The position numbers and the translations under genes are program-made. The notes under the pieces are model-generated. The model saw only the letters and a list, made by a program, of their open reading frames with translations. It made no database searches and was not told the origin of the DNA. A stretch of 64,000 nucleotides of DNA from Epithemia pelagica (taxonomy: Eukaryota > Protista > Bacillariophyta), in NCBI GenBank assembly GCA_946965045.2, contig OX337231.1, positions 2,604,001-2,668,000 of the forward strand, written 5' to 3'. Shown here one piece after another: positions 25,563 to 58,654 of the stretch; the stretch's first letter is position 1, and the number at the start of each line of letters is the position of its first letter.

Positions 25563-25703
25563 CAATAGAGAAGAAAAGTAGAAGAGTGCAAAAGCCAAAC
25601 CTGCCATTTATAGGAAATGAAATGCTAGCTACAGGTAGGTCTTTTCTATCATTCACACGATGAAGCACTCTGTGATCACATATGGCCAACACTGGTCTAG
25701 ACT

Positions 25704-29547: not shown

Positions 29548-29577
29548 CTCAAGCTAAAAAGCCCACAGTGCAATTTC

Positions 29578-29727
29578 CACTTGTGCCACGCGATCCAAAT
29601 CACGACTGGTCATTTCTTTATTTCCGGCATAGTAGATCCAGAAATAAATATACCGCCGTCAATCCTCCTGCATGTTGGAAGGAGGTACTAGCGCAACTTT
29701 TCGTTCGTAATTGTCCCACACGACGGC
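29578..29727 (-). pseudogene. Decayed internal fragment of crooked neck/CRNKL1
   Basis: Aligns without gaps to 61110-61259 (about 124/150 nt by manual count). Translates AVVWDNYERKVALVPPSNMQED*RRYIYFWIYYAGNKEMTSRDLDRVAQV versus [50 protein letters not shown]; TGG has become TGA. Confidence 0.9.
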
Positions 29728-29960
29728 AAACGTCGGGCTCGGGTCTGATGTTCGAGTGGGGTTTCTTCTTCTCTGTTGGCGGACCAGGACTAGCAGGGTC
29801 ACCGTTGGCCATGCCAATTTGAGCCCAAAAAGCTACTGCTGCCTAGTGGAATATATTCCTATTGTACAAAATCTACCACTATACACTCCAACACCAGAGA
29901 GTATACGTATATGGCATGCAAAAGGAAGTTCCACCAACAACTCCAGAACTATAGTCAATC

Positions 29961-32900
29961 GCCATCATCTTCGAACAATTAGATCATGAGGCCCATGGAC
30001 TCCATCCGAATTCTGACACAGGCTCCCTTCTAACTTGGTAATAACAGGAAGCATCATGCAGTTTCATAACAAGCGATGCCATCGACAACCGTTGGTATGC
30101 CTACGTACTGTCGACCAATTTCTTGTGGTCCGTGGCACACTGAAATGGCCATCTTTTTCGACCCCTTCCATCATGAGACCAATGGACTCGAATCTAATTC
30201 TGACACTTGCTCCATTTCTATTTGGCAAATACAGAAAGCATCATGCAGTTTCATTATAAGCGATGCCATGGATAAGCATTTGTATAGCTTCGTACTGTGG
30301 ACCAATTTCTTATGGTCCGTGGCACACTGAAATGGCCATCATTTTCGACCCCTTCCATCATGAGACCAATGGACTCGAATCTAATTCTGACACTTGCTCC
30401 ATTTCTATTTGGCAATTACAGAAAGCATCATGCAGTTTCATTATAAGCGATGCCATGGATAAGCATTTGTATAGCTACGTACTGTGGACCAATTTCTTGT
30501 GGTCCGTGGCACACTGAAATGGCCATCTTTTTCGAGCCCTTCCATCATGAGACCAATGGACTCTAATCCAATTCGAACACTTGCTCCATTGTTATTCGAG
30601 AATAACAGAAAGCATCATGCAGTTTCATTACAAGCGACATCATGGACAAGCATTTGTATAGCTATGTACTGTGGACCAATTTCTTGTGGTCCGTGGCACA
30701 CATAAATGGCCATCTTTTTCGAGCCCTTCCATCATGAATCCAATGGACTCCAATGTGATTCTGACACTTGCTCCATTCTTATTTGGCAATAACAGAAAGC
30801 ATCATGCAGCTTAATTACAAGCGCCATCATGGACAAGCATTTGTATAGCTACGTACTTTGGACCAATTTCTTGTGGTCCGTGGCACACTGAAATGGCCAT
30901 CTTTTTCAAACCCTTCCATCATGAGACCAATGGACTCCAATACGATTCTGACACTTGCTACATTCTAATTTAGCATTTACAAAAAGCATCATGCAGTTTC
31001 ATTACAAGCGATGCCATAGACAAGAATTTGTATAGCTACGTACTGTCGACCAATTTCTTGTGGTCCGTGGCACACTGAAATGGCCATCTTTTTCAAACCC
31101 TTCCATCATGAGACCAATGGACTCCAATGCAATTCTGACACTTGCTACATTCTAATTTAGCATTTACAGAAAGCTTCATGCAGTTTCATTACAAGCGATG
31201 CCATGGACAAGCATTTGTATAGCTACGTACTGTGGACCAATTTCTTGTGGTCCGTGGCACACTGAAATGGCCATCTTTTCAAAGCCCTTCCATCATGAGA
31301 CCAACGGACTCCAATGCAATTCTGACACATTCACCATTCTTTTTCACCAAGAACAGAAGGCATCATGCAGTTTCATTACAAGCGATGCCATGGACAAGCA
31401 TTTGTATAGCTACGTACTGTGGACCAATTTCTTGTGGTCCGTGGCACACTGAAATGGCCATCTTTTTCAAGCCCTTCCATCATGAGACCAATGGACTCCA
31501 ATGCAATTCTGACACTTGCTCCATTCTTATTTGGCAATAACAGAAAGCATCATGCAGTTTCATTACAAGCGACGTCATGGACAAGCATTTGTATAGCTAC
31601 GTACTGTGGACCAATTTCTTGTGGTCCGTGGCACACTGAAATGGCCATCTTTTTCAAGCCCTTCCATCATGAGACCAATGGACTCCAATGCAATTTTGAC
31701 ACTTGCTCCAATCTTATTTGGCATTAACAGAAAGCTTCATGCAGGTTAAATACAAGCGACATCATGGACAAGCATTTGTATAGCTACGTACTGTGGACCA
31801 ATTTCTTGTGGTCCGTGGCACACTGAAATGGCCATCTTTTTCGAGCCCTTCCATCATGAGACCAATGGACGCCAATACAATTCTGACACCTGCTCCATTC
31901 TTATTTAGGATTAACAGAAAGCAACATGCAGGTTAATTATAAGCGACATCATGGACAAGCATTTGTATAGCTACGTACTGTGGACCAATTTCTTGTGGTC
32001 CGTGGCACACTGAAATGGCCATCTTTTTCGACCCCTTCCATCATGAGACCAATGGACTCCAATGCAATTCTGACACTTGATCCATTCTTATTTAGCATTA
32101 ACAGAAAGCATCATGCAGGTTCATTACAAGCGATGCCATGGACAAGCATTTGTATAGCTACGTACTGTGGACCAATTTCTTGTGGTCCGTGGCACACTGA
32201 AATGGCCATCTTTTTCAAGCCCTTCCATCATGAGACCAATGGACTCCAATGCGATTCTGACACTTGCTCCATTCTTATTTAGCATTAATAGAAAGCAACA
32301 TGCAGGTTAATTACAAGCGACATCATGGACAAGCATTTGTATAGCTACGTACTGTGGACCAATTTCTTGTGGTCCGTGGCACACTGAAATGGCCATCTTT
32401 TTCGAGCCTTTCCATCATGAGACCAATGGACTCCAATGCAATTCTGACACCTGCTCCATTCTTATTTAGCATTTACAGAAAGCTTCATGCAGGTTAATTA
32501 CAAGCGACATCATGGACAAGCATTTGTATAGCTACGTACTGTGGACCAATTTCTTGTGGTCCGTGGCACACTGAAATGGCCATCTTTTTCGAGCCCTTCC
32601 ATCATGAGACCAATGGACTCAAATGCAATTCTGACACCTGCTCCATTCTTATTTGGCAATAACAGAAAGCATCATGCAGGTTAATTATAAGCGACATCAT
32701 GGACAAGCATTTGTATAGCTACGTACTGTCGACCAATTTCTCGTGGTCCGTGGCACACTGAAATGGCCATCTTTTTCGACCCCTTCCATCATGAGACCAA
32801 TGGACTCCAATCTAATTCTGACACTTGCTCCATTCTGATTTAGCATTAACAGAAAGCATCATGCAGGTTCATTACAAGCGATGCCATGGACAAGCATTTG

Positions 32901-35900
32901 TATAGCTACGTACTGTCGACCAATTTCTTGTGGTCCGTGGCACACTGAAATGGCCATCTTTTTCGACCCCTTCCATCATGAGACCAATGGACTCCAATGC
33001 AATTCTGACACTTGCTCCATTCTAATTTAGCATTTACAGAAAGCTTCATGCAGTTTCATTACAAGCGATGCCATGGACAAGCATTTGTATAGCTACGTAC
33101 TGTGGACCAATTTCTTGTGGTCCGTGGCACACTGAAATGGCCATCTTTTCAAAGCCCTTCCATCATGAGACCAACGGACTCCAATGCAATTCTGACACAT
33201 TCACCATTCTTTTTCACCAAGAACAGAAGGCATCATGCAGTTTCATTACAAGCGATGCCATGGACAAGCATTTGTATAGCTACGTACTGTGGACCAATTT
33301 CTTGTGGTCCGTGGCACACTGAAATGGCCATCTTTTCAAAGCCCTTCCATCATGAGACCAACGGACTCCAATGCAATTCTGACACATTCACCATTCTTTT
33401 TCACCAAGAACAGAAGGCATCATGCAGTTTCATTACAAGCGATGCCATGGACAAGCATTTGTATAGCTACGTACTGTGGACCAATTTCTTGTGGTCCGTG
33501 GCACACTGAAATGGCCATCTTTTTCAAGCCCTTCCATCATGAGACCAATGGACTCCAATGCAATTCTGACACTTGCTCCATTCTTATTTGGCAATAACAG
33601 AAAGCATCATGCAGTTTCATTACAAGCGACGTCATGGACAAGCATTTGTATAGCTACGTACTGTGGACCAATTTCTTGTGGTCCGTGGCACACTGAAATG
33701 GCCATCTTTTTCAAGCCCTTCCATCATGAGACCAATGGACTCCAATGCAATTTTGACACTTGCTCCAATCTTATTTGGCATTAACAGAAAGCTTCATGCA
33801 GGTTAAATACAAGCGACATCATGGACAAGCATTTGTATAGCTACGTACTGTGGACCAATTTCTTGTGGTCCGTGGCACACTGAAATGGCCATCTTTTTCG
33901 AGCCCTTCCATCATGAGACCAATGGACGCCAATACAATTCTGACACCTGCTCCATTCTTATTTAGGATTAACAGAAAGCAACATGCAGGTTAATTATAAG
34001 CGACATCATGGACAAGCATTTGTATAGCTACGTACTGTGGACCAATTTCTTGTGGTCCGTGGCACACTGAAATGGCCATCTTTTTCGACCCCTTCCATCA
34101 TGAGACCAATGGACTCCAATGCAATTCTGACACTTGATCCATTCTTATTTAGCATTAACAGAAAGCATCATGCAGGTTCATTACAAGCGATGCCATGGAC
34201 AAGCATTTGTATAGCTACGTACTGTGGACCAATTTCTTGTGGTCCGTGGCACACTGAAATGGCCATCTTTTTCAAGCCCTTCCATCATGAGACCAATGGA
34301 CTCCAATGCGATTCTGACACTTGCTCCATTCTTATTTAGCATTAATAGAAAGCAACATGCAGGTTAATTACAAGCGACATCATGGACAAGCATTTGTATA
34401 GCTACGTACTGTGGACCAATTTCTTGTGGTCCGTGGCACACTGAAATGGCCATCTTTTTCGAGCCTTTCCATCATGAGACCAATGGACTCCAATGCAATT
34501 CTGACACCTGCTCCATTCTTATTTAGCATTTACAGAAAGCTTCATGCAGGTTAATTACAAGCGACATCATGGACAAGCATTTGTATAGCTACGTACTGTG
34601 GACCAATTTCTTGTGGTCCGTGGCACACTGAAATGGCCATCTTTTTCGAGCCCTTCCATCATGAGACCAATGGACGCCAATGCAATTCTGACACCTGCTC
34701 CATTCTTATTTGGCAATAACAGAAAGCATCATGCAGGTTAATTATAAGCGACATCATGGACAAGCATTTGTATAGCTACGTACTGTCGACCAATTTCTCG
34801 TGGTCCGTGGCACACTGAAATGGCCATCTTTTTCGACCCCTTCCATCATGAGACCAATGGACTCCAATCTAATTCTGACACTTGCTCCATTCTGATTTAG
34901 CATTAACAGAAAGCATCATGCAGGTTCATTACAAGCGATGCCATGGACAAGCATTTGTATAGCTACGTACTGTCGACCAATTTCTTGTGGTCCGTGGCAC
35001 ACTGAAATGGCCATCTTTTTCGACCCCTTCCATCATGAGACCAATGGACTCCAATGCAATTCTGACACTTGCTCCATTCTTATTTAGCATTAACAGAAAG
35101 CCTCATGCAGGTTCATTACAAGCGATGCCATGGACAAGCATTTGTATAGCTACGTACTGTGGACCAATTTCTTGTGGTCCGTGGCACACTGAAATGGCCA
35201 TCTTTTTCAAGCCCTTCCATCATGAGACCAATGGACTCCAATGCGATTCTGACACTTGCTCCATTCTTATTTAGCATTAATAGAAAGCAACATGCAGGTT
35301 AATTACAAGCGACATCATGGACAAGCATTTGTATAGCTACGTACTGTGGACCAATTTCTTGTGGTCCGTGGCACACTGAAATGGCCATCTTTTTCGAGCC
35401 TTTCCATCATGAGACCAATGGACTCCAATGCAATTCTGACACCTGCTCCATTCTTATTTAGCATTTACAGAAAGCTTCATGCAGGTTAATTACAAGCGAC
35501 ATCATGGACAAGCATTTGTATAGCTACGTACTGTGGACCAATTTCTTGTGGTCCGTGGCACACTGAAATGGCCATCTTTTATAAGCCCTTCCATCATGAG
35601 ACCAATGGACTCAAATGCAATTGTGACACCTGCTCCATTCTTATTGAGCATTAATAGAAAGCAACATGCAGGTTAATAACAAGCGACATCATGGACAAGC
35701 ATTTGTATAGCTACGTACTGTGGACCAATTTCTTGTGGTCCGTGGCACACTGAAATGGCCATCTTTTTCAAGCCCTTCCATCATGAGACCAATGAACTCC
35801 AATACAATTCTGACACTTGATCCATTTCTATTTGGCAATATCAAAAAGCATCATGCAGTTTCATTACAAGCGATGCCATGGACAAGCATTTGTATAGCTA

Positions 35901-38900
35901 CGTACTGTGGACCAATTTCTTGTGGTCCGTGGCACACTTAAATGGCCATCCCTTCCATCATGACACCAATGGACTCCAATGCAATTCTGACACATTCACC
36001 ATTCTTATTTGGCAATAACAGAAAGCATCATGCAGTTTCATTACAAGCGACATCATGGACAAGCATTTGTATGGCTATGTACTGTGGACCAATTTCTTGT
36101 GGTCCGTGGCACACTGAAATGGCCATCTTTTTGAAACCCTTCCATCATGAGACCAATGGACTCCAATGTGATTCTGACACTTGCTCCATTCTTATTTAGC
36201 ATTAAAAGAAAGCATCATGCAGGTTCACTACAAGCGACATCATGGACAAGCATTTGTATAGCTACGTACTGTGGACCAATTTCTTGTGGTCCGTGGCACA
36301 CTGAAATGGCCATCTTTTTCGAGCCCTTTTATCGTGAGACCAATGGACGCCAATACGATTTTGACACTTGCTCCATTTCTATTTGGCAATAACAAAAAGC
36401 ATCATGCAGTTTCATTACAAGCGATGCCATGGACAAGCGTTTGTATAGCTACGTACTGTGGACCAATTTCTTGTGGTCCGTGGCACACTGAAATGGCCAT
36501 CTTTTTGAAACCCTTCCATCATGAGACCAATGGACTCCAATGTGATTCTGACACTTGCTCCATTCTTATTTAGCATTAAAAGAAAGCATCATGCAGGTTC
36601 ACTACAAGCGACATCATGGACAAGCATTTGTATAGCTACGTACTGTGGACCAATTTCTTGTGGTCCGTGGCACACTGAAATGGCCATCTTTTTCGAGCCC
36701 TTTTATCGTGAGACCAATGGACGCCAATACAATTCTGACCCTCTCTCCATTCTAATTTGACAATAACAGAAAGCATCATGCAGTCTCATTACAACTGTTG
36801 CCATGGACAAGCATTTGTATAGCTACGTACTGTGGACCAATTTCTTGTGGTCCGTGGCACACTGAAATGGCCATCTTTTTCAAGCCCTTCCATCATGAGA
36901 CCAATGGACGCCAATGCAATTCTGACACTTGCTCCATTCTTATTTAGCATTAACAGAAAGCATCATGCAGGTTAATTATAAGCAACATCATGGACAAGCA
37001 TTTGTATAGCTACGTACTGTGGACCAATTTCTTGTGGTCCGTGGCACACTGAAATGGCCATCTTTTTCAAGCCCTTCCATCATGAGACCAATGGACTCCA
37101 ATCTAATTCTGAAACTTGCTCCATTCTTATTTAGTATTAACAGAAAGCATCATGCAGGTTCATTACAAGCGATGCCATGGACAAGCATTTGTATAGCTAC
37201 GTACTGTCGACCAATTTCTTGTGGTCCGTGGCACACTGAAATGGCCATCTTTTTCGACCCCTTCCATCATGAGACCAATGGACTCCAATGCCATTCTGAC
37301 ACTTGCTCCATTCTTATTTAGCATTAACAGAAAGCATCATGCAGGTTCATTACAAGCGATGCCATGGACAAGCATTTGTATAGCTACGTACTGTGGACCA
37401 AATTCTTGTGGTCCGTGGCACACTGAAATGGCCATCTTTTTCAAGCCCTTCCATCATGAGACCAATGGACTCCAATGCGATTCTGACACTTGCTCCATTC
37501 TTATTTAGCATTAATAGAAAGCAACATGCAGGTTAATTACAAGCGACATCATGGACAAGCATTTGTATAGCTACGTACTGTGGACCAATTTCTTGTGGTC
37601 CGTGGCACACTGAAATGGCCATCTTTTTCGAGCCTTTCCATCATGAGACCAATGGACTCCAATGCAATTCTGACACCTGCTCCATTCTTATTTGGCATTT
37701 ACAGAAAGCTTCATGCAGGTTAATTACAAGCGACATCATGGACAAGCATTTGTATAGCTACGTACTGTGGACCAATTTCTTGTTGTCCGTGGCACACTGA
37801 AATGGCCATCTTTTATAAGCCCTTCCATCATGAGACCAATGGACTCCAATGCAATTCTGACACCTGCTCCATTCTTATTGAGCATTAATAGAAAGCAACA
37901 TGCAGGTTAATTTCAAGCGGCATCATGGACAAGCATTTGTATAGCTACGTACTGTGGACCAATTTCTTGTGGTCCGTGGCACACTGAAATGGCCATCTTT
38001 TTCAAGCCCTTCCATCATGAGACCAATGGACTCCAATCTAATTCTTACACTTGCTCCATTTCTATTTGGCAAGAATAGAAAGCATCATGGAGTTTCATTA
38101 CACAAGCATTTGTATAGCTACGTACTGTGGACCAAATTCTTGTGGTCCGTGGCACACTGAAATGGCCATCTTTTTCAAGCCCTGAATTCATGAGACCAAC
38201 GGAGTCCAATGCAATTCTGACACTTGCTCCATTCTTAAATGGCAATAATAAAAAGCATGATGCAGTTTCCTTACAAGCGATGCCATGGACAAGCATTTGT
38301 ATAGCTACGTACTGTGGACCAATTTCTTGTGGTCCGTGGCACACTGAAATGGATATTTTTTTCAAGCCCTTCCATCATGAGACCAATGGACTCCAATGCG
38401 ATTCTGACACTTGCTCCATTCTTATTTAGCCTCAACAGAAAGCCTCATGCAGGTTAATTACAAGCGACATCATGGACAGGCATTTGTATAGCTACGTACT
38501 GTGGACCAATTTCTTGTGGTCCATGGCACACTGAAATGGCCATCTTTTTCAAGCCCTTCCATCATGAGACCAATGGACTCCAATGCAATTCTGACACTTG
38601 CTCCTTTCTCATTAACCATTAACAGAATGCATCATGCAGTTTCATTACAAGCGATGCCATGGACAAGCATTTGTATAGCTACGTACTGTGGACCAATTTC
38701 TTGTGGTCCGTGGCACACTAAAATGGCCATCTTTTTCGAGCCCTTCCATCATGACACCAATGGACTCCAATGCAATTCTGACACATTCACCATTCTTATT
38801 TGGCAATAACAGAAAGCATCATGCAGTTTCATTACAAGCGACATCATGGACAAGCATTTGTATGGCTATGTACTGTGGACCAATTTCTTGTGGTCCGTGG

Positions 38901-41900
38901 CACACTGAAATGGCCATCTTTTTGAAACCCTTCCATCATGAGACCAATGGACTCCAATGTGATTCTGACACTTGCTCCATTCTTATTTAGCATTAAAAGA
39001 AAGCATCATGCAGGTTCACTAGAAGCGACATCATGACAAGCATTTGTATAGCTACGTACTGTGGACCAATTTCTTGTGGTCCGTGGCACACTGAAATGGC
39101 CATCTTTTTCGAGCCCTTTTATCGTGAGACCAATGGACGCCAATACAATTTGGACACTTGCTCCATTTCTATTTGGCAATAACAAAAAGCATCATGCAGT
39201 TTTATTACAAGCGATGCCATGGACAAGCGTTTGTATAGCTACGTACTGTGGACCAATTTCTTGTGGTCCGTGGCACACTGAAATGGCCATCTTTTTCAAG
39301 CCCTTCCATCATGAGACCAATGAACTCCAATACAATTCTGACCCTCTCTCCATTCTAATTTGACAATAACAGAAAGCATCATGCAGTCATTACAACTGTT
39401 GCCATGGACAAGCATTTGTATAGCTACGTACTGTGGACCAATTTCTTGTGGTCCGTGGCACACTGAAATGGCCATTTTTTTCAAGCCCTTCCATCATGAG
39501 ACCACTGGACTCCAATACGATTCTGACACTTGCTCCATTCTTATTTAGCCTCAACAGAAAGCCTCATGCAGGTTCATTACAAGCGACATCATGGACAGGC
39601 ATTTGTATAGCTACGTACTGTGGACCAATTTCTTGTGGTCCATGGCACACTGAAATGGCCATCTTTTTCAAGCCCTTCCATCATGAGACCAATGGACTCC
39701 AATGCAATTCTGACACTTGCTCCTTTCTTATTAACTATTAACAAAATGCATCATGCAGTTTCATTACAAGCGATGCCATGGACAAGCATTTGTATAGCTA
39801 CGTACTGTGGACCAATTTCTTGTGGTCCGTGGCACACTTAAATGGCCATCTTTTTCGAGCCCTTTTATCGTGAGACCAATGGACGCCAATACAATTTTGA
39901 CACTTGCTCCATTCTTATTTGGCAATAACAGAAAGCATCATGCAGTTTCATTACAAGCGACATCATGGACAAGCATTTGTATGGCTATGTACTGTGGACC
40001 AATTTCTTGTGGTCCGTGGCACACTGAAATGGCCATCTTTTTGAAACCCTTCCATCATGAGACCAATGGACTCCAATGTGATTCTGACACTTGCTCCATT
40101 CTTATTTAGCATTAAAAGAAAGCATCATGGACTCCAATGCCATTCTGACACTTGCTCTATTCTTATTTAGCATTAACAGAAAGCATCATGCAGGTTCATT
40201 ACAAGCGATGCCATGGACAAGCATTTGTATAGCTACGTTCTGTGGACCAAATTCTTGTGGTCCGTGGCACACTGAAATTGCCATCTTTTTCAAGCCTTTC
40301 ATCATGAGACCAATGGACTCCAATGCGATTCTGACACTTGCTCCATTCTTATTTAGCATTAATAGAAAGCAACATGCAGGTTAATTACAAGCGACATCAT
40401 GGACAAGCATTTGTATAGCTACGTACTGTGGACCAATTTCTTGTGGTCCGTGGCACACTGAAATGGCCATCTTTTTCGAGCCTTTCCATCATGAGACCAA
40501 TGGACTCCAATGCAATTCTGACACCTGCTCCATTCTTATTTAGCATTTACAGAAAGCTTCATGCAGGTTAATTACAAGCGACATCATGGACAAGCATTTG
40601 TATAGCTACGTACTGTGGACCAATTTCTTGTTGTCCGTGGCACACTGAAATGGCCATCTTTTATAAGCCCTTCCATCATGAGACCAATGGACTTCAATGC
40701 AATTCTGACACTTGCTCCTTTCTTATTAACCAATAACAGAAGGCATCATGCAGGTTCATTACAAGCGACATCATGGACAAGCATTTGTATAGCTACGTAC
40801 TGTGGACCAATTTCTTGTGGTCCGTGGCACACTGAAATGGTCATCTTTTTGAAACCCTTCCATCATGAGACCAATGGACTCCAATCTAATTCTTACACTT
40901 GCTCCATTTCTATTTGGCAATAATAGAAAGCATCATGGAGTTTCATTACACAAGCATTCGTATAGCTACGTACTGTGGACCAAATTCTTGTGGTCCGTGG
41001 CACACTGAAATGGCCATCTTTTTCAAGCCCTGAAATCATGAGACCAACGGACTCCAATGCAATTCTGACACTTGCTCCATTCTTAAATGGCAATAATAAA
41101 AAGCATGATGCAGTTTCCTTACAAGCGATGCCATGGACAAGCATTTGTATAGCTACGTACTGTGGACCAATTTCTTGTGGTCCGTGGCACACTGAAATGG
41201 ATATTTTTTTCAAGCCCTTCCATCATGAGACCAATGGACTCCAATGCGATTCTGACACTTGCTCCATTCTTATTTAGCCTCAACAGAAAGCCTCATGCAG
41301 GTGAATTACAAGCGACATCATGGACAGGCATTTGTATAGCTACGTACTGTGGACCAATTTCTTGTGGTCCATGGCACACTGAAATGGCCATCTTTTTCAA
41401 GCCCTTCCAGCATGAGACCAATGGACTCCAATGCAATTCTGACACTTGCTCCTTTGTTATTAACCATTAACAGAATGCATCATGCAGTTTCATTACAAGC
41501 GATGCCATGGACAAGCATTTGTATAGCTACGTACTGTGGACCAATTTCTTGTGGTCCGTGGCACACTAAAATGGCCATCTTTTTCGAGCCCTTCCATCAT
41601 GACACCAATGGACTCCAATGCAATTCTGACACATTCACCATTCTTATTTGGCAATAACAGAAAGCATCATGCAGTTTCATTACAAGCGACATCATGGACA
41701 AGCATTTGTATGGCTATGTACTGTGGACCAATTTCTTGTGGTGCGTGGCACACTGAAATGGCCATCTTTTTGAAACCCTTCCATCATGAGACCAATGGAC
41801 TCCAATGTGATTCTGACACTTGCTCCATTCTTATTTAGCATTAAAAGAAAGCATCATGCAGGTTCACTACAAGCGACATCATGACAAGCATTTGTATAGC

Positions 41901-44900: not shown

Positions 44901-47900
44901 GTGGTCCGTGGCACACTGAAATGGCCATCTTTTTCAAGCCCTTCCATCATGAGACCAACGGACTCCAATGCAATTCTGACACATTCACCATTCTTTTTTA
45001 CCAAGAACAGAAGGCATCATGCAGTTTCATTACAAGCGATGCCATGGACAAGCATTTGTATAGCTACGTACTGTGGACCAATTTCTTGTGGTCCGTGGCA
45101 CACTGAAATGGCCATCTTTTTCAAGCCCTTCCATCATGCGACCAATGGACTCCAATGCAATTCTGACACTTGCTCCATTCTTATTTAGCATTAACAGAAA
45201 GCATCATGTAGTTTCATTACAAGCGACGTCATGGACAAGCATTTGTATAGCTACGTACTGTGGATCAATTTCTTGTGGTCCGTGGCACACTGAAATGGCC
45301 ATCTTTTTCAAGCCCTTCCATTATGAGACCAATGGACGCCAATGCAACTCTGACACTTGCTCCAATCTTATTGACCAATAACAGAAAGCCTCATGCAGGT
45401 TAATTACAAGCGACATCATGGACAAGCATTTGTATAGCTACGTACTGTGGACCAATTTCTTGTGGTCCGTGGCACACTGAAATGGCCATCTTTTTCGAGC
45501 CTTTCCATCATGAGACCAATGGACTCCAATGCAATTCTGACACCTGCTCCATTCTTATTTAGCATTTACAGAAAGCTTCATGCAGGTTAATTACAAGCGA
45601 CATCATGGACAAGCATTTGTATAGCTACGTACTGTGGACCAATTTCTTGTGGTCCGTGGCACACTTTAATGGCCATCTTTTTCAAGCCCTTCCATCATGA
45701 GACCAATGGACTCCAATGCGATTCTGACACTTGCTCCATTCTTATTTAGCATTAATTGAAAGCAACATGCAGGTTAATTACAAGCGACATCATGGACAAG
45801 CATTTGTATAGCTACGTACTGTGAACCAATTTCTTGTGGTCCGTGGCACACTGAAATGGCCATCTTTTTCGAGCCTTTCCATCATGAGACCAATGGACTC
45901 CAATGCAATTCTGACACCTGCTCCATTCTTATTTAGCATTTACAGAAAGCTTCATGCAGGTTAATTACAAGCGACATCATGGACAAGCATTTGTATAGCT
46001 ACGTACTGTGGACCAATTTCTTGTGGTCCGTGGCACACTTTAATGGCCATCTTTTTCAAGCCCTTCCATCATGAGACCAATGGACTCCAATGCGATTCTG
46101 ACACTTGCTCCATTCTTATTTAGCATTAATTGAAAGCAACATGCAGGTTAATTACAAGCGACATCATGGACAGGCATTTGTATAGCTACGTACTGTGAAC
46201 CAATTTCTTGTGGTCCATGGCACACTGAAATGGCCATCTTTTTCAAGCCTTTCCATCATGAGACCAATGGACTCCAATGCAATTCTGACACCTGCTCCTT
46301 TCTTATTAACTATTAACAGAAAGCTTCATGCAGGTTAATTACAAGCGACATCATGGACAAGCATTTGTATAGCTACGTACTGTGGACCAATTTCTTGTGG
46401 TCCGTGGCACACTTTAATGGCCATCTTTTTCAAGCCCTTCCATCATGACACCAATGGACTCCAATGCAATTCTGACACATTCACCATTCTTATTTGGCAG
46501 AAAGCCTCATGCAGGTTAATTACAAGCGACATCATGGACAGGCATTTGTATAGCTACGTACTGTGGACCAATTTCTTGTGGTCCATGGCACACTGAAATG
46601 GCCATCTTTTTCAAGCCCTTCCATCATGAGACCAATGGACTCCAATGCAATTCTGACACTTGCTCCTTTCTTATTAACTATTAACAGAATGCATCATGCA
46701 GGTTCATTACAAGCGATGCCATGGACAAGCATTTGTATAGCTACGTACTGTGGACCAATTTCTTGTGGTTCGTGGCACACTAAAATGGCCATCTTTTTCG
46801 AGCCCTTCCATCATGACACCAATGGACTCCAATGCAATTCTGACACATTCACCATTCTTATTTGGCAGAAAGCCTCATGCAGGTTAATTACAAGCGACAT
46901 CATGGACAGGCATTTGTATAGCTACGTACTGTGGACCAATTTCTTGTGGTCCGTGGCACACTGAAATGGCCATCTTTTCAAAGCCCTTCCATCATGAGAC
47001 CAATGGACTCCAATGCAATTCTGACACATTCACCATTTTTATTTGGCAATAACAGAACGCATCATGCAGGTTCATTACAAGCGATGCCATTGACAAGCAT
47101 TTGTATAGCTACGTACTGTGGACCAATTTCTTGTGGTCCGTGGCACACTGAAATGGCCATCTTTTTCAAGCCTTTCCATCATGAGACCAATGGACTCCAA
47201 TGCAATTCTGACACCTGCTCCATTCTTATTTAGCATTTACAGAAAGCTTCATGCAGGTTAATTACAAGCGACATCATGGACAAGCATTTGTATAGCTACG
47301 TACTGTGGACCAATTTCTTGTGGTCCGTGGCACACTTTAATGGCCATCTTTTTCAAGCCCTTCCATCATGAGACCAATGGACTCCAATTACATTCTGACA
47401 CCTGCTCCATTCTTATTGAGCATTAACAGAAAGCCTCATGCAGGTTAATTACAAGCGACATCATGGACAGGCATTTGTATAGCTACGTACTGTGGACCAA
47501 TTTCTTGTGGTCCATGGCACACTGAAATGGCCATCTTTTTCAAGCCCTTCCATCATGAGACCAATGGACTCCAATGCAATTCTGACACTTGCTCCTTTCT
47601 TATTAACTATTAACAGAATGCATCATGCAGTTTCATTACAAGCGATGCCATGGACAAGCATTTGTATAGCTACGTACTGTGGACCAATTTCTTGTGGTTC
47701 GTGGCACACTAAAATGGCCATCTTTTTCGAGCCCTTCCATCATGACACCAATGGACTCCAATGCAATTCTGACACATTCACCATTCTTATTTGGCAGAAA
47801 GCCTCATGCAGGTTAATTACAAGCGACATCATGGACAGGCATTTGTATAGCTACGTACTGTGGACCAATTTCTTGTGGTCCATGGCACACTGAAATGGCC

Positions 47901-50900
47901 ATCTTTTTCAAGCCCTTCCATCATGAGACCAATGGACTCCAATGCAATTCTGACACTTGCTCCTTTCTTATTAACTATTAACAGAATGCATCATGCAGGT
48001 TCATTACAAGCGATGCCATGGACAAGCATTTGTATAGCTACGTACTGTGGACCAATTTCTTGTGGTTCGTGGCACACTAAAATGGCCATCTTTTTCGAGC
48101 CCTTCCATCATGACACCAATGGACTCCAATGCAATTCTGACACATTCACCATTCTTATTTGGCAGAAAGCCTCATGCAGGTTAATTACAAGCGACATCAT
48201 GGACAGGCATTTGTATAGCTACGTACTGTGGACCAATTTCTTGTGGTCCGTGGCACACTGAAATGGCCATCTTTTTCAAGCCCTTCCATCATGAGACCAA
48301 TGGACTCCAATGCAATTCTGACACTTGCTCCATTCTTATTTAGCAGTAAAAGAAAGCATCATGCAGTTTCATTACAAGCGATGCCATTGACAAGCATTTG
48401 TATAACTACGTACTGTGGACCAATTTCTTGTGGTCCGTGGCACACTGAAATGGCCATCTTTTCAAAGCCCTTCCATCATGAGACCAATGGACTCCAATGC
48501 AATTCTGACACATTCACCATTTTTATTTGGCAATAACAGAACGCATCATGCAGGTTCATTACAAGCGATGCCATTGACAAGCATTTGTATAGCTACGTAC
48601 TGTGGACCAATTTCTTGTGGTCCGTGGCACACTGAAATGGCCATCTTTTTCAAGCCCTTCCATCATGAGACCAATGGACTCCAATGCAATATGAACACTT
48701 CCTCCATTCTTATTTGCCAATAACACAAAGCATCATGCAGATTCATTACAAGCGATGCCATGGACAAGAATTTGTATAGCTACGTACTGTCGACCAATTT
48801 CTTGTGGTCCGTGGCACACTGAAATGGCCATCTTTTTCAAACCCTTCCATCATTAGACCAATGGACTCCAATGCAATTCTGACACTTGCTACATTCTAAT
48901 TTAGCATTTACAGAAAGCTTCATGCAGTTTCATTTCAAGCGATGCCATGGACAAGCATTTGTATAGCTACGTACTGTGGACCAATTTCTTGTGGTCCGTG
49001 GCACACTGAAATGGCCATCTTTTCAAAGCCCTTCCATCATGAGACCAACGGACTCCAATGCAATTCTGACACATACACCATTCTTTTTTACCAAGAACAG
49101 AAGGCATCATCCAGTTTCATTACAAGCGATGCCATGGACAAGCATTTGTATAGCTACGTACTGTGGACCAATTTCTTGTGGTCCGTGGCACACTGAAATG
49201 GCCATCTTTTTCAAGCCCTTCCATCATGAGACCAATGGACTCCAATGCAATTCTGACACTTGCTACATTCTAATTTAGCATTTACAGAAAGCATCATGCA
49301 GTTTCATTACAAGCGACGTCATGGACAAGCATTTGTATAGCTACGTACTGTGGACCAATTTCTTGTGGTCCGTGGCACACTTAAATGGCCATCTTTTTGA
49401 AACCCTTCCATTATGAGACCAATGGACTCCAATGCAGTTCTGACACATTCACCATTTTTATTTGGCAATAACAGAACGCATCATGCAATTTCATTACAAT
49501 AGACGTAATGGACAAGCATTTGTATAGCTACGTACTATGGACCAATTTCTTGTGGTCCGTGGCACACTGAAATGGCCATCTTTTTCAAGCCCTTCCATCA
49601 TGAGACCAATGGACTCCAATGCGATTCTGACACTTGCTCCATTCTTATTTAGCATTAAAAAGAAAGCATCATGCAGGTTAATTATAAGCGATGCCATGGA
49701 CAAGCATTTGTATAGCTACGTACTGTGGACCAATTTCTTGTTGTCCGTGGCACACTTTAATGGCCATCTTTTTCAAGCACTTCCATCATGAGACCAATGG
49801 ACTCCAATGCAATTCGGACACTTGCTCCATTCTTATTTAGCATTAACAGAAAGCATCATGCAGGTTAATTACAAGCGATGCCATGGACAAGCATTTGTAT
49901 AGCTACGTACTGTGGACCAATTTCTTGTGGTCCGTGGCACACTTAAATGGCCATCTTTTTGAAACCCTTCCATTATGAGACCAATGGACTCCAATGCAAC
50001 TCTGACACTTGCTCCATTTTTATTTGGCAATAACAAAAAGCATCATGCAGGTTCATTACAAGCGATGCCATGGACAAGCATTTGTATAGCTACGTACTGT
50101 GGACCAATTTCTTGTGGTCCGTGGCACACTAAAATGGCCATCTTTTTCAAGCCCTTCCATCATGAGACCAATGGACTCCAATGCAATTCTGACACTTGCT
50201 CCATTCTAACTTAGGATTAACAGAAAGCTTCACGCAGGTTAATTACAAGCGACATCATGAACAAGCATTTGTATAGCTACGTACTGTGGACCAATTTCTT
50301 GCGGTCCGTGGCACACTGAAATGGCCATCTTTTCAAAGCCCTTCCATCATGAGACCAACGGACTCCAATGCAATTCTGACACATTCACCATTTTTATTTG
50401 GCAGTAACAGAACGCATCATGCAGTTTCATTACAATAGACGTAATGGACAAGCATTTGTATAGCTACGTACTGTGGACCAATTTCTTGCGGTCCGTGGCA
50501 CACTGAAATGGCCATCTTTTTCGACCCCTTCCATCATGAGACCAATGGACTCCAATGCGATTCTGACACTTGCTCCATTCTTATTTAGCAATAACAGAAA
50601 GCATCATGCAGGTTCATTACAAGCGATGCCATGGACAAGCATTTTTATAGCTACGTACTGTGGACCAATTTCTTGTGGTCCGTGGCACACTGAAATGGCC
50701 ATCTTTTTCAAGCCCTTCCATCATGAGACCAATGGACTCCAATGCGATTCTGACACTTGCTCCATTCTTATTTAGCATTAAAAAGAAAGCATCATGCAGG
50801 TTAATTATAAGCGATGCCATGGACAAGCATTTGTATAGCTACGTACTGTGGACCAATTTCTTGTGGTCCGTGGCACACTTAAATGGCCATCTTTTTCAAG

Positions 50901-53900
50901 CCCTTCCATCATGAGACCAATGGACTCCAATGCAATTCTGACACTTGCTCCATTCTTATTTAGCATTAACAGAAAGCATCATGCAGGTTCATTACAAGCG
51001 ATGCCATGGACAAGCATTTGTATAGCTACGTACTGTGGACCAATTTCTTGTGGTCCGTGGCACACTGAAATGGCCATTTTTTTCGACCCCTTCCATCATG
51101 AGACCAATGGACTCCAATGCAATTCTGACACTTGCTCCACTCTTATTTACCAATATCAGAAAACCTCATGCAAGTTCATTACAAACGATGCCATGGACAA
51201 GCATTTGTATAGCTACGTACTGTGGACCAAGTTCTTGTGGTCCGTGGCACACTGAAATGGCCATCTTTTCAAAGCCCTTCTACCATGAGACCAATGGACT
51301 CCAATGCAATTCTGACACTTGCTCCTTTCTTATTAACCAATAACAGAAGGCATCATGCAGGTTCATTACAAGCGACATCATGGACAAGCATTTGTATAGC
51401 TACGTACTGTGGACCAATTTCTTGTGGTCCGTGGCACACTGAAATGGTCATCTTTTTGAAACCCTTCCATCATGAGACCAATGGACTCCAATGCAATTCT
51501 GACACTTGCTCCATTTTTATTTGGCAATAACGAAAGCATCATGCAATGTACAAGCGATGCCATGAACAAGCATTTGTATAGCTACGTACTGTGGACCAAT
51601 TTCTTGTGGTCCGTGGCACACTTAAATGGCCATCTTTTTGAAACCCTTCCATTATGAGACCAATGGACTCCAATGCAATTCTGACACTTGCTCCATTTTT
51701 ATTTGGCAATAACAAAAAGCATCATGCAGGTTCATTACAAGCAATGCCATGGACAAACATTTGTATAGCTACGTACTGTGGACCAATTTCTTGTGGTCCG
51801 TGGCACACTGAAATGGCCATCTTTTTCGAGCCCTTCTATCATGAGACCAATGGACTCGAATGCAATTCTGACACCTGCTCTATTTTCCTTTGGCAATAAC
51901 AGAAAGCATCGTGCAGTTTCATTACAAGCGATGCCATGGACAAGCATTTGTATAGCTACGTACTGTGGACCAATTTCTTGTGGTCCGTGGCACACTGAAA
52001 TGGCCATTTATTCGACCCCTTCCATCATGAGACCAATGGACTCCAATGCAATTCTGACACTTGCTCCCCTCTTATTTAGCATTAACAGAAAGGATCATGC
52101 AGGTTCATTACAAGCGATGCCATGGACGAGCATTTGTATAGCTACGTACTGTGGACCAATTTCTTGTGGTCCGTGGCACACTGAAATGTCCATCTTTTTC
52201 GAGCCCTTCCATCATGAGACCAATGGACTCCAATGCAATTCTGACACTTGCTCCATTCTTATTTAGCATTCACAGAAAGCATCATGCAGGTTAATTGCAA
52301 GCGATGCCATGGACAAGCATTTGTATAGCTACGTACTGTGGACCAATTTCTTGTGGTCCGTGGCACACTGAAATGGCCATTTTTTTCGACCTCTTCCATC
52401 ATGAGACCAATGGACTCCAATGCAATTCTGACACTTGCTCCATTCTTATTTACCAATAACAGAAAGCATCATGCAGGTAAATTACAAGCGACATCATGGA
52501 CAAGCATTTGTATAGCTACGTACTGTGGACCAAGTTCTTGTGGTCCGTGGCACACTGAAATGGCCATCTTTTTTGAGCCCTTCCATCATGAGACCAATGG
52601 ACGCCAATGCAATTCTGACACCTGCTCCATTCTTATTTAGCTTTAACAGACAGCATCATGCAGGTTACTTACAAGCGACATCATGGACAAGCATTTGTAT
52701 AGCTACGTACTGTGGACCAATTTCTTGTGGTCCGTGGCACACTGAAATGGCCATCTTTTTCAAGCCCTTCCATCATGAGACCAATGGACTCCAATGAAAT
52801 TCTGACACTTGCTCCATTCTTATTTAGCCTTAACAGAAAGCATCATGCAAGTTCATTACAAGCGATGCCATTGACAAGCATTTTTATAGCTACGTACTGT
52901 GGACCAATTTCTTGTGGTCCGTGGCACACTGAAATGGCCATCTTTTTCGACCCCTTCCATCATGAGACCAATGGACTCCAATGCATTTCTGACACTTGCT
53001 CCATTCTTATTTACCAATAACAGAAAGCATCATGCAGGTTCATTACAAGCGATGCCATTGACAAGCATTTGTATAACTACGTACTGTGGACCAATTTCTT
53101 GTGGTCAGTGGCACACTGAAATGGCCATCTTTTTTAAGTCCTTCCATCATGAGACCAATGGACTCCAATGCGATTCTGACACTTGCTCCATTCTTATTTA
53201 GCATTAATAGAAAGCATCATGCAGGTTAATTACAAGCGACATCATGGACAAGCATTTGTATAGCTACGTACTGTGGACCAATTTCTTGTGGTCCGTGGCA
53301 CACTGAAATGTCCATCTTTTTCGAGCCCTTCCATCATGAGACCAATGGACTCCAATGCAATTCTGACACTTGCTCCATTCTTATTTAGCATTCACAGAAA
53401 GCATCATGCAGGTTAATTGCAAGCGATGCCATGGACAAGCATTTGTATAGCTACGTACTGTGGACCAATTTCTTGTGGTCCGTGGCACACTGAAATGGCC
53501 ATTTTTTTCGACCTCTTCCATCATGAGACCAATGGACTCCAATGCAATTCTGACACTTGCTCCATTCTTATTTACCAATAACAGAAAGCATCATGCAGGT
53601 AAATTACAAGCGACATCATGGACAAGCATTTGTATAGCTACGTACTGTGGACCAATTTCTTGTGGTCCGTGGCACACTGAAATGGCCATCTTTTTTGAGC
53701 CCTTCCATCATGAGACCAATGGACGCCAATGCAATTCTGACACCTGCTCCATTCTTATTTAGCTTTAACAGACAGCATCATGCAGGTTACTTACAAGCGA
53801 CATCATGGACAAGCATTTGTATAGCTACGTACTGTGGACCAATTTCTTGTGGTCCGTGGCACACTGAAATGGCCATCTTTTTCAAGCCCTTCCATCATGA

Positions 53901-56900
53901 GACCAATGGACTCCAATGAAATTCTGACACTTGCTCCATTCTTATTTAGCCTTAACAGAAAGCATCATGCAAGTTCATTACAAGCGACATCATGGACAAG
54001 CATTTGTATAGCTACGTACTGTGGACCAATTTCTTGTGGTCCGTGGCACACTGAAATGGCCATCTTTTTCGACCCCTTCCATCATGAGACCAATGGACTC
54101 CAATGCATTTCTGACACTTGCTCCATTCTTATTTACCAATAACAGAAAGCATCATGCAGGTTCATTACAAGCGATGCCATTGACAAGCATTTGTATAACT
54201 ACGTACTGTGGACCAATTTCTTGTGGTCAGTGGCACACTGAAATGGCCATCTTTTTTAAGTCCTTCCATCATGAGACCAATGGACTCCAATGCGATTCTG
54301 ACACTTGCTCCATTCTTATTTAGCATTAACAGAAAGCTTCATGCAGGTTAATTACAAGCATCATCATGGACAAGCATTTGTATAGCTACGTACTGTGGAC
54401 CAATTTCTTGTGGTCCGTGGCACACTTAAATGGCCATCTTTTTCGAGCCCTTCCATCATGAGACCAATGGACTCCAATGCAATTCTGACACCTGCTCCAT
54501 TCTTACTGAGCATTAATAGAAAGCAACATGCAGGTAAATTACAAGCGACATCATTGACAAGCATTTGTATAGCTACGTACTGTGGACCAATTTCTTGTTG
54601 TCCGTGGCACACTGAAATGGCCAATTTTTTGACCCCTTCCATCATGAGACCAATGGACTCCAATGCAATTCGGACACTTGCTCCATTCTTATTTGCCAAT
54701 AACAATAAGCATCATGCAGGTTAATTACAAGCGATGCCATGGACAAGCATTTGTATAGCTACGCACTGTGGACCAATTTCTTGTGGTCCGTGGCACACTG
54801 AAATGGCCATCTTTTTCGACCCCTTCCATCATGAGACCAATGGACTCCAATGCAATTCTGACACTTGCTCCATTCTTATTTAGCATTAACAGAAAGCATC
54901 ATGCAGTTTCATTACAAGCGATGCCATTGACAAGCATTTGTATAGCTACGGACTGTGGATCAATTTCTTGTGGTCCGTGGCACACTGAAATGGCCATCTT
55001 TTCAAAGCCCTTCCATCATGAGACCCATGGACTCCAATGCAATTCTGACACATTCACCATTTTTATATGGCAATAACAGAAGGCATCATGCAGGTTCAAT
55101 ACAAGGGACGTCATGGACAAGCATTTGTATAGCTATGTACTGTGGACCAATTTCTTGTGGTCCGTGGCACACTGAAATGGCCATCTTTTTCGAGCCCTTC
55201 TATCATGAGACCAATGGACTCCAATGCAATTCTGACACCTGCTCTATTTTCCTTTGGCAATAACAGAAAGCATCGTGCAGTTTCATTACAAGCGATGCCA
55301 TGGACAAGCATTTGTATAGCTACGTACTGTGGACCAATTTCTTGTGGTCCGTGGCACACTGAAATGGCCATTTATTCGACCCCTTCCATCATGAGACCAA
55401 TGGACTCCAATGCAATTCTGACACTTGCTCCATTCTTTTTTAGCATTAACAGAAAGCATCATGCAGGTTCATTACAAGCGATGCCATGGACAAGCATTTG
55501 TATAGCTACGTACTGTGGACCAATTTCTTGTGGTCCGTGGCACACTGGAATGGCCATTTTTTTCCATCTTTTTCAAGCCCTTCCATCATGAGACCAATGG
55601 ACTCCAATGCAATTCTGACACTTGCTCCATTCTTATTTAGCATTAACAGAAAGCATCATGCAGGTTAATTACAAGCGACATCATGGACAAGCATTTGTAT
55701 AGCTACGTACTGTGGACCAATTTCTTGTGGTCCGTGGCACACTGAAATGGCCATCTTTTTCGAGCCCTTCCATCATGAGACCAATGGACTCCAATGCAAT
55801 TCTGACACCTGCTCCATTCTTATTGAGCATTAATAGAAAGCAACATGCAGGTTAATTACAAGCGACATCATTGACAAGCATTTGTATAGCTACGTACTGT
55901 GGACCAATTTCTTGTTGTCCGTGGCACACTGAAATGGCCATTTTTTTCGACCCCTTCCATCATGAGACCAATGGACTCCAATGCAATTCGGACACTTCCT
56001 CCATTCTTATTTGCCAATAACAATAAGCATCATGCAGGTTCATTACAAGCGATGCCATGGACAAGCATTTGTATAGCTACGTACTGTGGACCAATTTCTT
56101 GTGGTCCGTGGCACACTGAAATGGCCATCTTTTTCAAGCCCTTCCATCATGAGACCAATGGACTCCAATGCAATTCTGACACATTCACCATTTTTATATG
56201 GCAATAACAGAAGGCATCATGCAGGTTCATTACAAGGGACATCATGGACAAGCATTTGTATAGCTACGTACTGTGGACCAATTTCTTGTGGTCCGTGGCA
56301 CACTGAAATGGCCATCTTTTTCAAGCCCTTCCATCATGAGACCAATGGACTCCAATGCAATTCTGACACTTGCTCCATTCTTATATAGCATTAAAAGAAA
56401 GCATCATGCAGGTTAATTATAAGCGATGCCATGAACAAGCATTTGTATAGCTACGTACTGTGGACCAATTTCTTGTGGTCCGTTGCACTCTTTAATGGCC
56501 ATCTTTTTCAAGCCCTTCCATCATGAGACCAATGGACTCCAATGCAATTCTGACACTTGCTCCATTCTAATTTAGCATTAACAGAAAGCATCATGCAGGT
56601 TAATTACAAGCGATGCCATGGACAAGCATTTGTATAGCTACGTACTGTGGACCAATTTCTTGTGGTCCGTGGCACACTGAAATGGCCATTTTTTTCGACC
56701 CCTTCCATCATGAGACCAATGGACTCCAATGCAATTCTGACACTTGCTATATTTTCATTTGGCAATAACAGAAAGCATCGTGCAGTTTCATTATAAGCGA
56801 CATCATGGACAAGCATTTTTATAGCTACGTACTGTGGACCAATTTCTTGTGGTCCGTGGCACACTTAAATGGCCATCTTTTCGACCCCTTCCATCATGAG

Positions 56901-57617
56901 ACCAATGGACTCCAATGCAATTCTGACACTTGCTCCATTTTTATTTGTCAAGGACAGAATGCATCATGCAGTTTCATTACAAGCGACATCATGGACAAGC
57001 ATTTGTATAACTACTTACTGTGGACCAGTTTCTTGTGGTCCGTGGCACACTGAAATGGCCATCTTTTTCAAGCCCTTCCATCATGAGACCAATGGACTCA
57101 AATCCAAGTCTGACACTTGCTCCATTCTTATTTGGCAATAACAGAAAGCATCATGCAGGTGAATTACAAGCGACGTCATGGACAAGCATTTGTATAGCTA
57201 CGTACTGTGGAGCAGTTTCTTGTGGTCCGTGGCACACTGAAATGGCCATCTTTTTCAAGCCTTTCCATCATGAGACCAATGGACTCAAATCCAAGTCTGA
57301 CACTTGCTCCATTCTTATTTGGCAATAACAGAAAGCATCATGCAGGTGAATTACAAGCGACGTCATGGACAAGCATTTGTATAGCTACGTACTGTGGAGC
57401 AGTTTCTTGTGGTCCGTGGCACACTGAAATGGCCATCTTTTTCAAGCCTTTCCATCAAGAGACCGATTGACTCCAATCCAATTCTGACACTTGCTCCATT
57501 TGTATTTGGCAATAGCAGAAAGCATCATGGAGTTTCATAACAAGTGATTCCATGGACAATTGTTGGTATGCTTACGGATCCTGGACCATTTTCTTGTGGT
57601 CAGTGGCACATTGAAAT
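29961..57617 (+). repeat. 187-bp tandem satellite array, ~27.7 kb, about 148 head-to-tail monomers with higher-order repeats
   Basis: Consensus GTACTGTGGACCAATTTCTTGTGGTCCGTGGCACACTGAAATGGCCATCTTTTTCAAGCCCTTCCATCATGAGACCAATGGACTCCAATGCAATTCTGACACTTGCTCCATTCTTATTTAGCATTAACAGAAAGCATCATGCAGGTTCATTACAAGCGATGCCATGGACAAGCATTTGTATAGCTAC (187 nt, ~43% GC). The 187-bp period is also visible in ORF-track offsets (e.g. 31232 to 31419). Confidence 0.99.
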
Positions 57618-58654
57618 AAAGGATTGTTCATGGATTCAATTCTAATAACTACGGAGTTGCTGCTTAGAGCTAGTTATCATTCATGGGGACATTGATTGTC
57701 TTTTTCCTGGTATAATGCACAGTCACCTTTGAAGGCACTAGCTATCTCTAGTCTAGCTCTACTAGGAGTAGCTATCAACAGTTGGTCAGGTCAAATAACC
57801 TATCTGCGATTGCATTAGTTCTTCCTGATACTCCTACTTAGTCACAAAACAGAAGTTTCTTACGTGTGCGTTGTGCGGTGTTGTCTTCGCTGGAGAGAGA
57901 AAGACAGAGTGCAGGAATAAGATCTGAGGTGACTGGTGGTCTGTCCATTGTCTGTGTCTGGCCCAGTCCCTATGTTCATCCAAATCCCGTGACCATCCAT
58001 CTCCTCGCACTATCTTTCCCATTTTAGTACTATTATACCAATAGTACCTGTGCTTTCCCATTTTGAATTTCCGATTTCATGATCGGTTCTGAACTTGTGA
58101 TTGGCTTGTTTGTTGCCAATGTCTCTTCTCATTGGCCCCTTTCTTGGCACCTCCATCGAACCTACTCTCTTCTGGATACAAAATCCATCCAGCCACCATA
58201 ACATTTGCTGCACCGACCAGTTCCAGTCAATGCCACGGAATGAAGGGATAGAGGATGTGGATGTGGGAGAATCACACGTACAACTTGATCAAGTTCCCAT
58301 TATTTTTTGAAGCAGGCCCATTGGTTCAGTCTTTGGGGTTGCAACCACATCGTAACACGTCTATTTCGTGGCCCAGTTTTTTTTCAAACAAGGGACACGT
58401 CAACCAGGTCTTCAGTTGAGGTGCCAGGAGCCTATTTATTGGCAATTGTTTGTGGGAGCTGAAAAGGTGCAGTAATAGGTTCCCAGCAGCAGTTGATTCA
58501 CCCTTCAGCTTTGCTTGTGTTTTGGGTTGTCGCAGCCTACTTGTCTTCTTGAACCATCAGGCCCAACCACAGTAACACTTGTGTTGTACCGAAGCAAGTT
58601 GGTACCGCCATAAGCCAGACCTTTGACAACATCAGTCACATTGAGCCCCTTGAA

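Follow-up and report, generated by a model that had tools for sequence, protein, structure and literature searches.

A 187-bp satellite array in the diatom Epithemia pelagica, probably private to one locus and renewed within each chromosome

What kind of element is a gene-free block of about 150 tandem copies of a 187-bp sequence, set among the genes of a diatom? Such a block lies in a 64,000-bp stretch of Epithemia pelagica DNA (contig OX337231.1, positions 2,604,001 to 2,668,000; hereafter the window), and an earlier note on this DNA proposed that it might be a satellite-based centromere or a block of heterochromatin. The only mapped diatom centromeres are repeat-free and, to our knowledge, satellite DNA has scarcely been described in diatoms. 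The evidence assembled here favors the interpretation that the array is a locus-specific, or private, non-coding satellite that was born in place, that has been turned over within each chromosome, and that is probably silent; we regard this interpretation as probable, with appreciable room left for doubt. No new mechanism is shown by the locus, and if the array is not a centromere, then it amounts to a private satellite of the ordinary kind, although a well-documented one. What such a locus offers is a view of satellite birth and upkeep in a fully assembled, haplotype-resolved example. An ancestral empty site is identifiable in relatives, the phase of the proposed founding duplication is kept at both array ends, and two apparent homologues point to turnover within, rather than between, chromosomes.

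The array extends over 29957..57617 on the plus strand (27,661 bp) and comprises 148 full and 2 partial monomers, as established with Tandem Repeats Finder (TRF) and nhmmer. TRF reported one array (29983-57617; period 187; 147.9 copies; 85% matches), and a monomer profile hidden Markov model (HMM) built from 10 monomers matched the 64-kb window 150 consecutive times between 29957 and 57617, always on the plus strand and nowhere outside the array. The approximately 148 head-to-tail monomers described in the earlier note are therefore upheld. Monomer spacing is exactly 187 bp in 126 of 149 cases. The remaining spacings reflect indel variants (173, 177, 181, 185, 186, 188 and 197 bp) and one 61-bp partial duplication inside a monomer (39955-40190; TRF period 61, 2 copies, 93%), which is located between the two copies of an 11-monomer block described below. 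These are the sole irregularities, and no foreign insert was found in the array. A conserved 24-mer of the monomer occurs 99 times versus 0 expected, and the mean pairwise identity of monomers is approximately 0.89-0.91.

Other features of the array also agree with its first description. No open reading frame (ORF) within it exceeds 162 amino acids (aa), Rfam and tRNA scans of the array were empty, and the satellite ORFs yielded no match to Pfam, consistent with the claim that genes and transposons are not interspersed among the monomers. A coding origin of the monomer was considered as well and rejected, given this lack of a Pfam match and the lack of significant similarity to the neighboring CLF1 gene. 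The GC content of the array ranges from 0.417 to 0.432 (42.5% overall) compared to 0.46-0.51 in the flanks, which is the modest deficit (approximately 43% GC) that had been noted, and GC skew is constant at -0.14 because of the composition of the monomer. The nearest ORFs are located 1.46 kb to the left of the array and 1.04 kb to its right, and thus the array does stand beside gene-dense DNA. Its edges are indeed diverged. The two terminal monomers, which are partial, are the most distant from the consensus (29957..30070, plus strand, phases 74-187, 79% identity; 57543..57617, plus strand, phases 2-76, 76% identity), the next few reach 90-93%, and the interior stands at 94%. Consensus identity is flat at approximately 0.94 along the array, with only the outermost 1-5 monomers more diverged. 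The monomer itself exhibits no internal sub-repeat or dyad symmetry beyond shuffled controls, and it lacks the 10-bp WW periodicity that serves as a nucleosome-positioning signal. The term "nucleosome-length" is a likeness in length alone. Regardless, the array is satellite DNA in that it is a long, uninterrupted tandem array of single orientation that is non-coding and that exhibits turnover within the array.

The earlier note also described layered higher-order repeats (HORs), and this claim holds in part. Mean monomer identity is flat over lags of 1-40 monomers (0.88-0.90), and therefore there is no regimented HOR. A regular HOR array was rejected on these grounds, there being only two-copy blocks and short local motifs of 2-3 copies. 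A 374-bp row in the TRF output, which spans the same stretch as the 187-bp row, was likewise rejected as an HOR because it reflects local alternation only. What remains of the claim is a set of blocks, each of 4-11 monomers and present in two copies, at lags 6, 11, 12, 16, 30 and 63, all of the larger ones on the plus strand. The largest recent block covers 11 monomers at lag 16 (37915-39954 duplicated at 40763-42802; 99.0% identity over 2040 bp). Others include a 10-monomer block at lag 11 (31193-33062 and 33250-35119; 99.7% over 1870 bp), a 6-monomer block at lag 30 (43163-44285 and 48750-49872; 100% over 1123 bp), and a 6-monomer tandem block at lag 6 (52112-53233 and 53234-54355; 98.9%), with smaller duplicated blocks at lags 12 and 63. 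Clustering of monomers into types recovers these duplicated blocks and a few short alternating stretches.

How such an array is maintained can be judged from a second copy of the locus. The window is represented in ENA assembly ERZ21939226 by contig ctg1351l (1,617,356 bp), which is identical over the 15,346 bp compared and which carries the array at approximately 861-889 kb. By using ORFs read through the satellite as protein queries, we found that another contig of this assembly, ctg1244l (318,562 bp), carries the same locus; overlapping pieces of this contig were joined without conflict. Its allelic array occupies positions 245182-274673 (loci L003-L006; 29,492 bp). As in the window, the 905-aa gene, the PDZ gene and an orphan ORF lie to the left and the DUF6824 and CLF1 genes to the right, and the flanks are 99.1% identical over 7.9 kb on the left and 98.6% identical over 5.6 kb on the right. 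We take ctg1351l (haplotype A) and ctg1244l (haplotype B) to represent either the two homologues of a diploid or two co-occurring strains, and the argument regarding turnover is the same either way.

Between these haplotypes, orthology is confined to approximately four monomers at the left edge and two at the right. The orthologous pairs include A1 and B1 (0.99), A2 and B2 (0.94), A4 and B6 (0.99), A149 and B163 (0.98), and A150 and B164 (1.00). The array interiors share no run of at least 3 monomers at 97% identity and no collinear block. A global alignment of the haplotypes at the level of monomers does score better than permuted orders, and its high-identity pairs are edge monomers only. 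Mean monomer identity is 0.913 and 0.906 within the two haplotypes and 0.906 between them, which indicates a shared variant pool. The best matches have a mean identity of 0.983 (A) and 0.985 (B) within a monomer's own haplotype versus 0.955 and 0.951 across haplotypes, and identical pairs of monomers number 37 within each haplotype and 0 between them. For approximately 90% of monomers (131 of 146 in A and 133 of 148 in B), the nearest neighbor resides in the same haplotype. A twin with at least 99% identity exists in the same haplotype for 66 of 150 monomers (A) and 70 of 164 (B), and in the other haplotype only for the edge monomers A1, A4 and A150. Some types of monomer were found in one haplotype and not in the other; one of them, a 234-bp variant in which 48 bp are inserted after phase 47, occurs 7 times in B and never in A. 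Haplotype B also has block duplications of its own, such as a 6-monomer unit that occurs approximately three times near its left end.

The plain reading of this comparison is that both arrays drew on one old pool of variants and that, after the haplotypes had parted, each seems to have been rebuilt by duplication and loss of blocks confined to its own chromosome, with the edges taking no part. The time since this separation corresponds to approximately 1% divergence of the flanks. The block copies in the window, with identities of 98.9-100%, are therefore judged to be younger than the haplotype split. Furthermore, the haplotype comparison leads to the conclusion that exchange between homologues is rare or absent. 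The pattern matches the classical expectation of unequal sister-chromatid exchange or slippage, and it is from this match that we infer a mechanism. Following a founding duplication, the array would have expanded to approximately 150 copies and would have been kept up by intrachromosomal exchange, with blocks of 4-11 monomers gained or lost at a time, perhaps through replication slippage, break repair or unequal sister-chromatid exchange. The outermost monomers, being unable to pair out of register, would remain orthologous and decay.

It could be argued that these patterns describe an assembly artefact rather than a chromosome, in which the assembler lengthened a short repeat or joined it wrongly. 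Assemblies are prone to error in satellite arrays, and because ctg1351l is identical to the window over the compared stretch, it does not constitute an independent assembly. However, the two haplotypes were assembled separately and yet have the same edges and similar lengths. The monomers differ by approximately 9% on average, and no near-identical block is longer than 2 kb, a size well within the length of long reads. Moreover, the left junction of the array is spanned by independent short-read contigs of two runs, one per haplotype: one of these contigs agrees fully with the window, and the other is substituted as in haplotype B at positions 29950 and 29981. We consequently give an artefact almost no credence.

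The birthplace of the array is indicated by the arrangement of its neighbors in other species. In two related diatoms (L007, ENA k141_581674, whose CLF1 is 74% identical; L009, JGI Ga0400283_000770, 71%), homologues of the 905-aa gene, the PDZ gene and the CLF1 gene are contiguous by tblastn, with PDZ and CLF1 tail to tail at a distance of 50-100 bp. No homology to the monomer was found in this spacer in either relative. The corresponding interval in the window, from the PDZ stop codon to the CLF1 stop codon, is a lineage-specific island of 34.6 kb (25563..60218, unstranded; delimited by tblastn synteny and Pfam). The adjacency of PDZ and CLF1 in the relatives therefore places the array in a lineage-specific island that has been gathering insertions and duplications. 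This arrangement, along with the finding of the array at one locus on both haplotypes, also speaks in favor of the lineage-specific satellite that the earlier note had offered as an alternative to a centromere.

The ends of the array provide further information on its origin. In both haplotypes, the array runs from phase 74 to phase 76 of the monomer, with a span that exceeds a whole number of periods by three bases, AAT. A coincidence of phase within 3 bp would have a chance of approximately 4% if the array had been delivered by a transposon or randomly truncated. At the array edges, the flanks share neither inverted nor direct repeats, and we found no terminal inverted repeats (TIRs) and no target-site duplication; the 34.6-kb island is likewise not bounded by TIRs or a target-site duplication. 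Homology to the monomer in the flanks is not significant, because shuffled sequences equalled or exceeded the observed score in 13 of 300 trials on the right and in 205 of 300 on the left. The matching end phases and the lack of repeats in the flanks thus fit a tandem duplication in place between short microhomologies, and we consider it most likely that the array arose in this manner. The founding event would have been the tandem duplication, in place, of a local 187-bp segment in the intergenic island between PDZ and CLF1, probably via a 3-bp microhomology (AAT) that fixed the phase at both ends.

The same observations bear on the possibility that the array was brought in by a mobile element or grew from one as an amplified remnant. 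It is reasonable to consider such an origin given that the island also contains a multi-copy transposable element, relics of CLF1 and an orphan ORF. However, neither the array nor the island has inverted or direct terminal repeats at its edges, and the shared phase of start and end in both haplotypes is not what delivery by an element would predict. In addition, Pfam detects no transposase or recombinase domain in the ORFs of the island, and the search with protein queries revealed no second copy of the monomer. A mobile origin is therefore quite improbable in our estimation.

The search for additional copies made use of the fact that the satellite can be read as protein. Among 5.8 billion proteins, the ORF on the plus strand of the satellite (135 aa) corresponds to 3 protein clusters and that on the minus strand (86 aa) to 11, and every one of these clusters maps to ctg1351l or ctg1244l only. 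The conserved 24-mer gave 0 matches in JGI metagenome contigs. By these searches, the family appears to be confined to one locus, which is occupied on both haplotypes. High genomic abundance and multiple arrays, which are further marks of satellite DNA, were accordingly not observed in this indirect test via gene calls.

Regarding the state of the array in the cell, its dinucleotide composition offers a hint. The ratio of observed to expected CpG is 0.46 in the array, whereas the flanks have ratios of 0.95 and 0.88, and the array shows an excess of TpG and CpA. Among the full monomers of the two haplotypes (294 in total), variability at CpG columns is 2.7 times that at other columns. The changes seen most often are G>A and C>T, and CG occurs as a variant at several TG/CA positions. 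Cytosine methylation is usual for repeats in diatoms, and the depletion and variability of CpG agree with methylation of the array, for which they are weak evidence. These counts are of cells and not of events, and the array is essentially one 187-bp sequence, so its CpG ratio carries little independent weight. We propose that the array is most likely packaged as silent, cytosine-methylated chromatin and that it has no sequence-specific cellular function. To this extent, the suggestion of heterochromatin receives indirect support from the CpG sites.

Alternatively, the array might be the source of a functional RNA, either as a small-RNA cluster or as a long non-coding RNA that acts on its neighbors or on chromatin. 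Satellites are often transcribed at a low level, and the region upstream of the DUF6824 gene borders on the array. However, no sequencing run on record as RNA holds the array stretch, which is no proof of silence. Folding of the array strand does not exceed that of shuffled controls (z = 0.5), and no Rfam family is present. Furthermore, rapid turnover and the 9% divergence among monomers argue against constraint on sequence. The array is thus very unlikely to be a source of functional RNA.

Several points weigh against a private satellite of the history proposed above. The coincidence of phase rests on a 3-bp match and on the ends of HMM alignments in diverged edge monomers. Confinement to one locus was judged from the gene calls of a single public assembly and from searches seeded with exact words, and relatives of the monomer below approximately 75% nucleotide identity would escape the search. 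The summed contig depth of the array is on the order of that expected from two assembled arrays, and such depth cannot be read as a copy number. The case for methylation and silent chromatin comes from composition only. Finally, the lengths of the two arrays differ by only 6% despite complete turnover of their interiors. This similarity could hint at a constraint on length, something that would not be expected under a purely neutral model.

The latter point returns us to the question of whether the array is the centromere of its chromosome, in the form of a chromosome-specific, nucleosome-length satellite with CENH3 nucleosomes on its 187-bp units. Other chromosomes would then rely on different satellites of 170-190 bp. 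If this were true, then the centromere would keep a length near 28-30 kb even as its interior turned over independently on each homologue, and its architecture would be unlike the short, repeat-free, low-GC centromeres mapped in Phaeodactylum. A gene-free array of 28-30 kb composed of nucleosome-length units is compatible with this function, as are the similar lengths of the haplotypes (27.7 and 29.5 kb) despite fully reshuffled interiors. The array is also located at 53-55% of the 1.62-Mb contig, and fast, haplotype-specific turnover is typical of centromeric satellites too. Indeed, sequence alone would hardly tell the array apart from a satellite centromere that is specific to one chromosome.

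However, numerous observations stand against this function. The centromeres of Phaeodactylum tricornutum, which have been defined by CENP-A chromatin immunoprecipitation sequencing and by episome assays, are short, repeat-free regions with less than 33% GC over at least 500 bp, and they were found as clusters of 100-bp windows with a GC content of 32% or less (10.1101/096016). Those predicted in Fistulifera solaris are 1.4-2 kb in length, have 36-42% GC, and are without highly repeated elements (10.1101/2021.11.10.468027). Like these regions (approximately 0.5-3 kb overall), the array is a gene-free interval between genes with a GC content below that of its flanks. In contrast, it is 27.7 kb in length and purely repetitive, and none of its 100-bp windows reaches 32% GC or less (minimum, 0.34 over 100 bp and 0.398 over 500 bp). 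Only two such windows exist in the 64-kb window, and both are in the left flank. A centromere of the Phaeodactylum type was therefore rejected on both GC content and freedom from repeats, and most likely the array is not one.

Resemblance to the regional satellite centromeres of plants and animals fares no better. Such a centromere is not supported because the monomer family, found at one locus, is not common to several chromosomes, because there is no homogenized core (consensus identity is flat near 0.94 and mean pairwise identity is 0.91), and because genes are found within 1-1.5 kb of either edge, where no zone resembling a pericentromere is present. The absence of a regimented HOR, of 10-bp WW periodicity and of dyad symmetry in the monomer points in the same direction, as does the fact that the site is merely a 50-100-bp spacer in two related diatoms. 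The earlier note had stated that the centromere proposal would fail if the monomer were confined to this locus while CENH3 mapped elsewhere on the chromosome, and the first of these two circumstances, confinement, is what the search with satellite ORFs found. On balance, the proposal of a centromere lacks support, and we consider this function unlikely.

Comparisons to well-described satellites help to place the array. Human alpha satellite (171 bp) and Arabidopsis CEN178/180, for which we draw on general knowledge and on reviews (PMC8122249, PMC12692304), likewise consist of head-to-tail, non-coding units of approximately 170-190 bp with diverged edges; like the array, they turn over by unequal exchange, include variants specific to a haplotype, and contain local blocks of several monomers. 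In contrast, these satellites extend over hundreds of kilobases on every chromosome, whereas the array covers 28-30 kb at a single locus, has no regimented HOR or homogenized core, and is not AT-rich (42.5% GC). The Cast1-Cast9 families of Tribolium castaneum (approximately 170/340 bp) are similar to the array in that units of satellite length reside among genes outside the centromere and are highly dynamic. These families, however, occupy many loci and are exchanged between non-homologous chromosomes, whereas the family described here seemingly occupies one, and the array is far longer than typical euchromatic arrays (PMC4675708). Among stramenopiles, PpSat1 and PpSat2 of Phytophthora parasitica are satellites that, like the array, became apparent in an improved assembly and exhibit family-specific dynamics. 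By their descriptions they are set apart from it, because they are abundant and multi-locus and one is conserved among oomycetes, while the array is restricted to a single locus and is absent from the site in two relatives (PMC7290008).

The remaining features of the island and its borders are as follows. In addition to the array, the island holds an orphan ORF, a miniature inverted-repeat transposable element (MITE), fragments of CLF1 and the DUF6824 gene. The 705-aa HAT-repeat protein that flanks the island is of the CLF1/crooked-neck type according to Pfam. Its named homologues, at 65-69% identity, derive from Cylindrotheca, Nitzschia, Bacillariaceae, Cyclotella, Skeletonema and Chaetoceros, with the best of these (Cylindrotheca, Nitzschia and Bacillariaceae) at 68-69%, in keeping with the diatom host that the earlier note had assumed; the closest homologues overall exhibit 73-77% identity, which leaves this diatom with no close sequenced relative in the collection searched. 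A partial duplicate of this gene is present on the minus strand at 29492..29736, where blastn detects two fragments in the same order and orientation as in the intact gene. The first (29492-29547) is 84% identical to the 3' flank of CLF1 (60049-60104), the second (29578-29736) is 82% identical to its coding sequence (61110-61268), and 975 bp are missing between them. To judge by this arrangement, the fragments are the relic of an old partial duplication, and they lie on the far side of the array from CLF1.

The MITE is 305 bp in length (28960-29264) and hAT-like, with perfect 16-bp TIRs (TAGAGGTTGGACCCGC / GCGGGTCCAACCTCTA) and an 8-bp target-site duplication (GTGCCGTT). Its summed contig depth is 20-100 times that of the unique flank in three runs, and loose contig ends begin exactly at both of its tips. 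Therefore, this element is multi-copy and has probably been mobile in recent times. The orphan ORF of 929 aa (25704-28493, minus strand) is missing from the PDZ-CLF1 interval of the two related diatoms. A region of its product (residues at approximately 30-235) recurs, at approximately 40% identity, in some 90 proteins of 200-1300 aa, each the representative of a cluster. No family was found for the ORF itself, the ten representatives that were scanned contain no Pfam family, and a match to 2OG-Fe(II) oxygenase (E = 0.05) is not significant. The DUF6824 gene (58655-59536, plus strand; 293 aa), which is directly to the right of the array, is also absent from the PDZ-CLF1 interval of the relatives. 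Finally, TRF reports small two-copy tandem repeats in the gene-rich left flank at 8203-8323 (57 bp, inside a 1677-aa ORF) and at 14509-14670 (83 bp).

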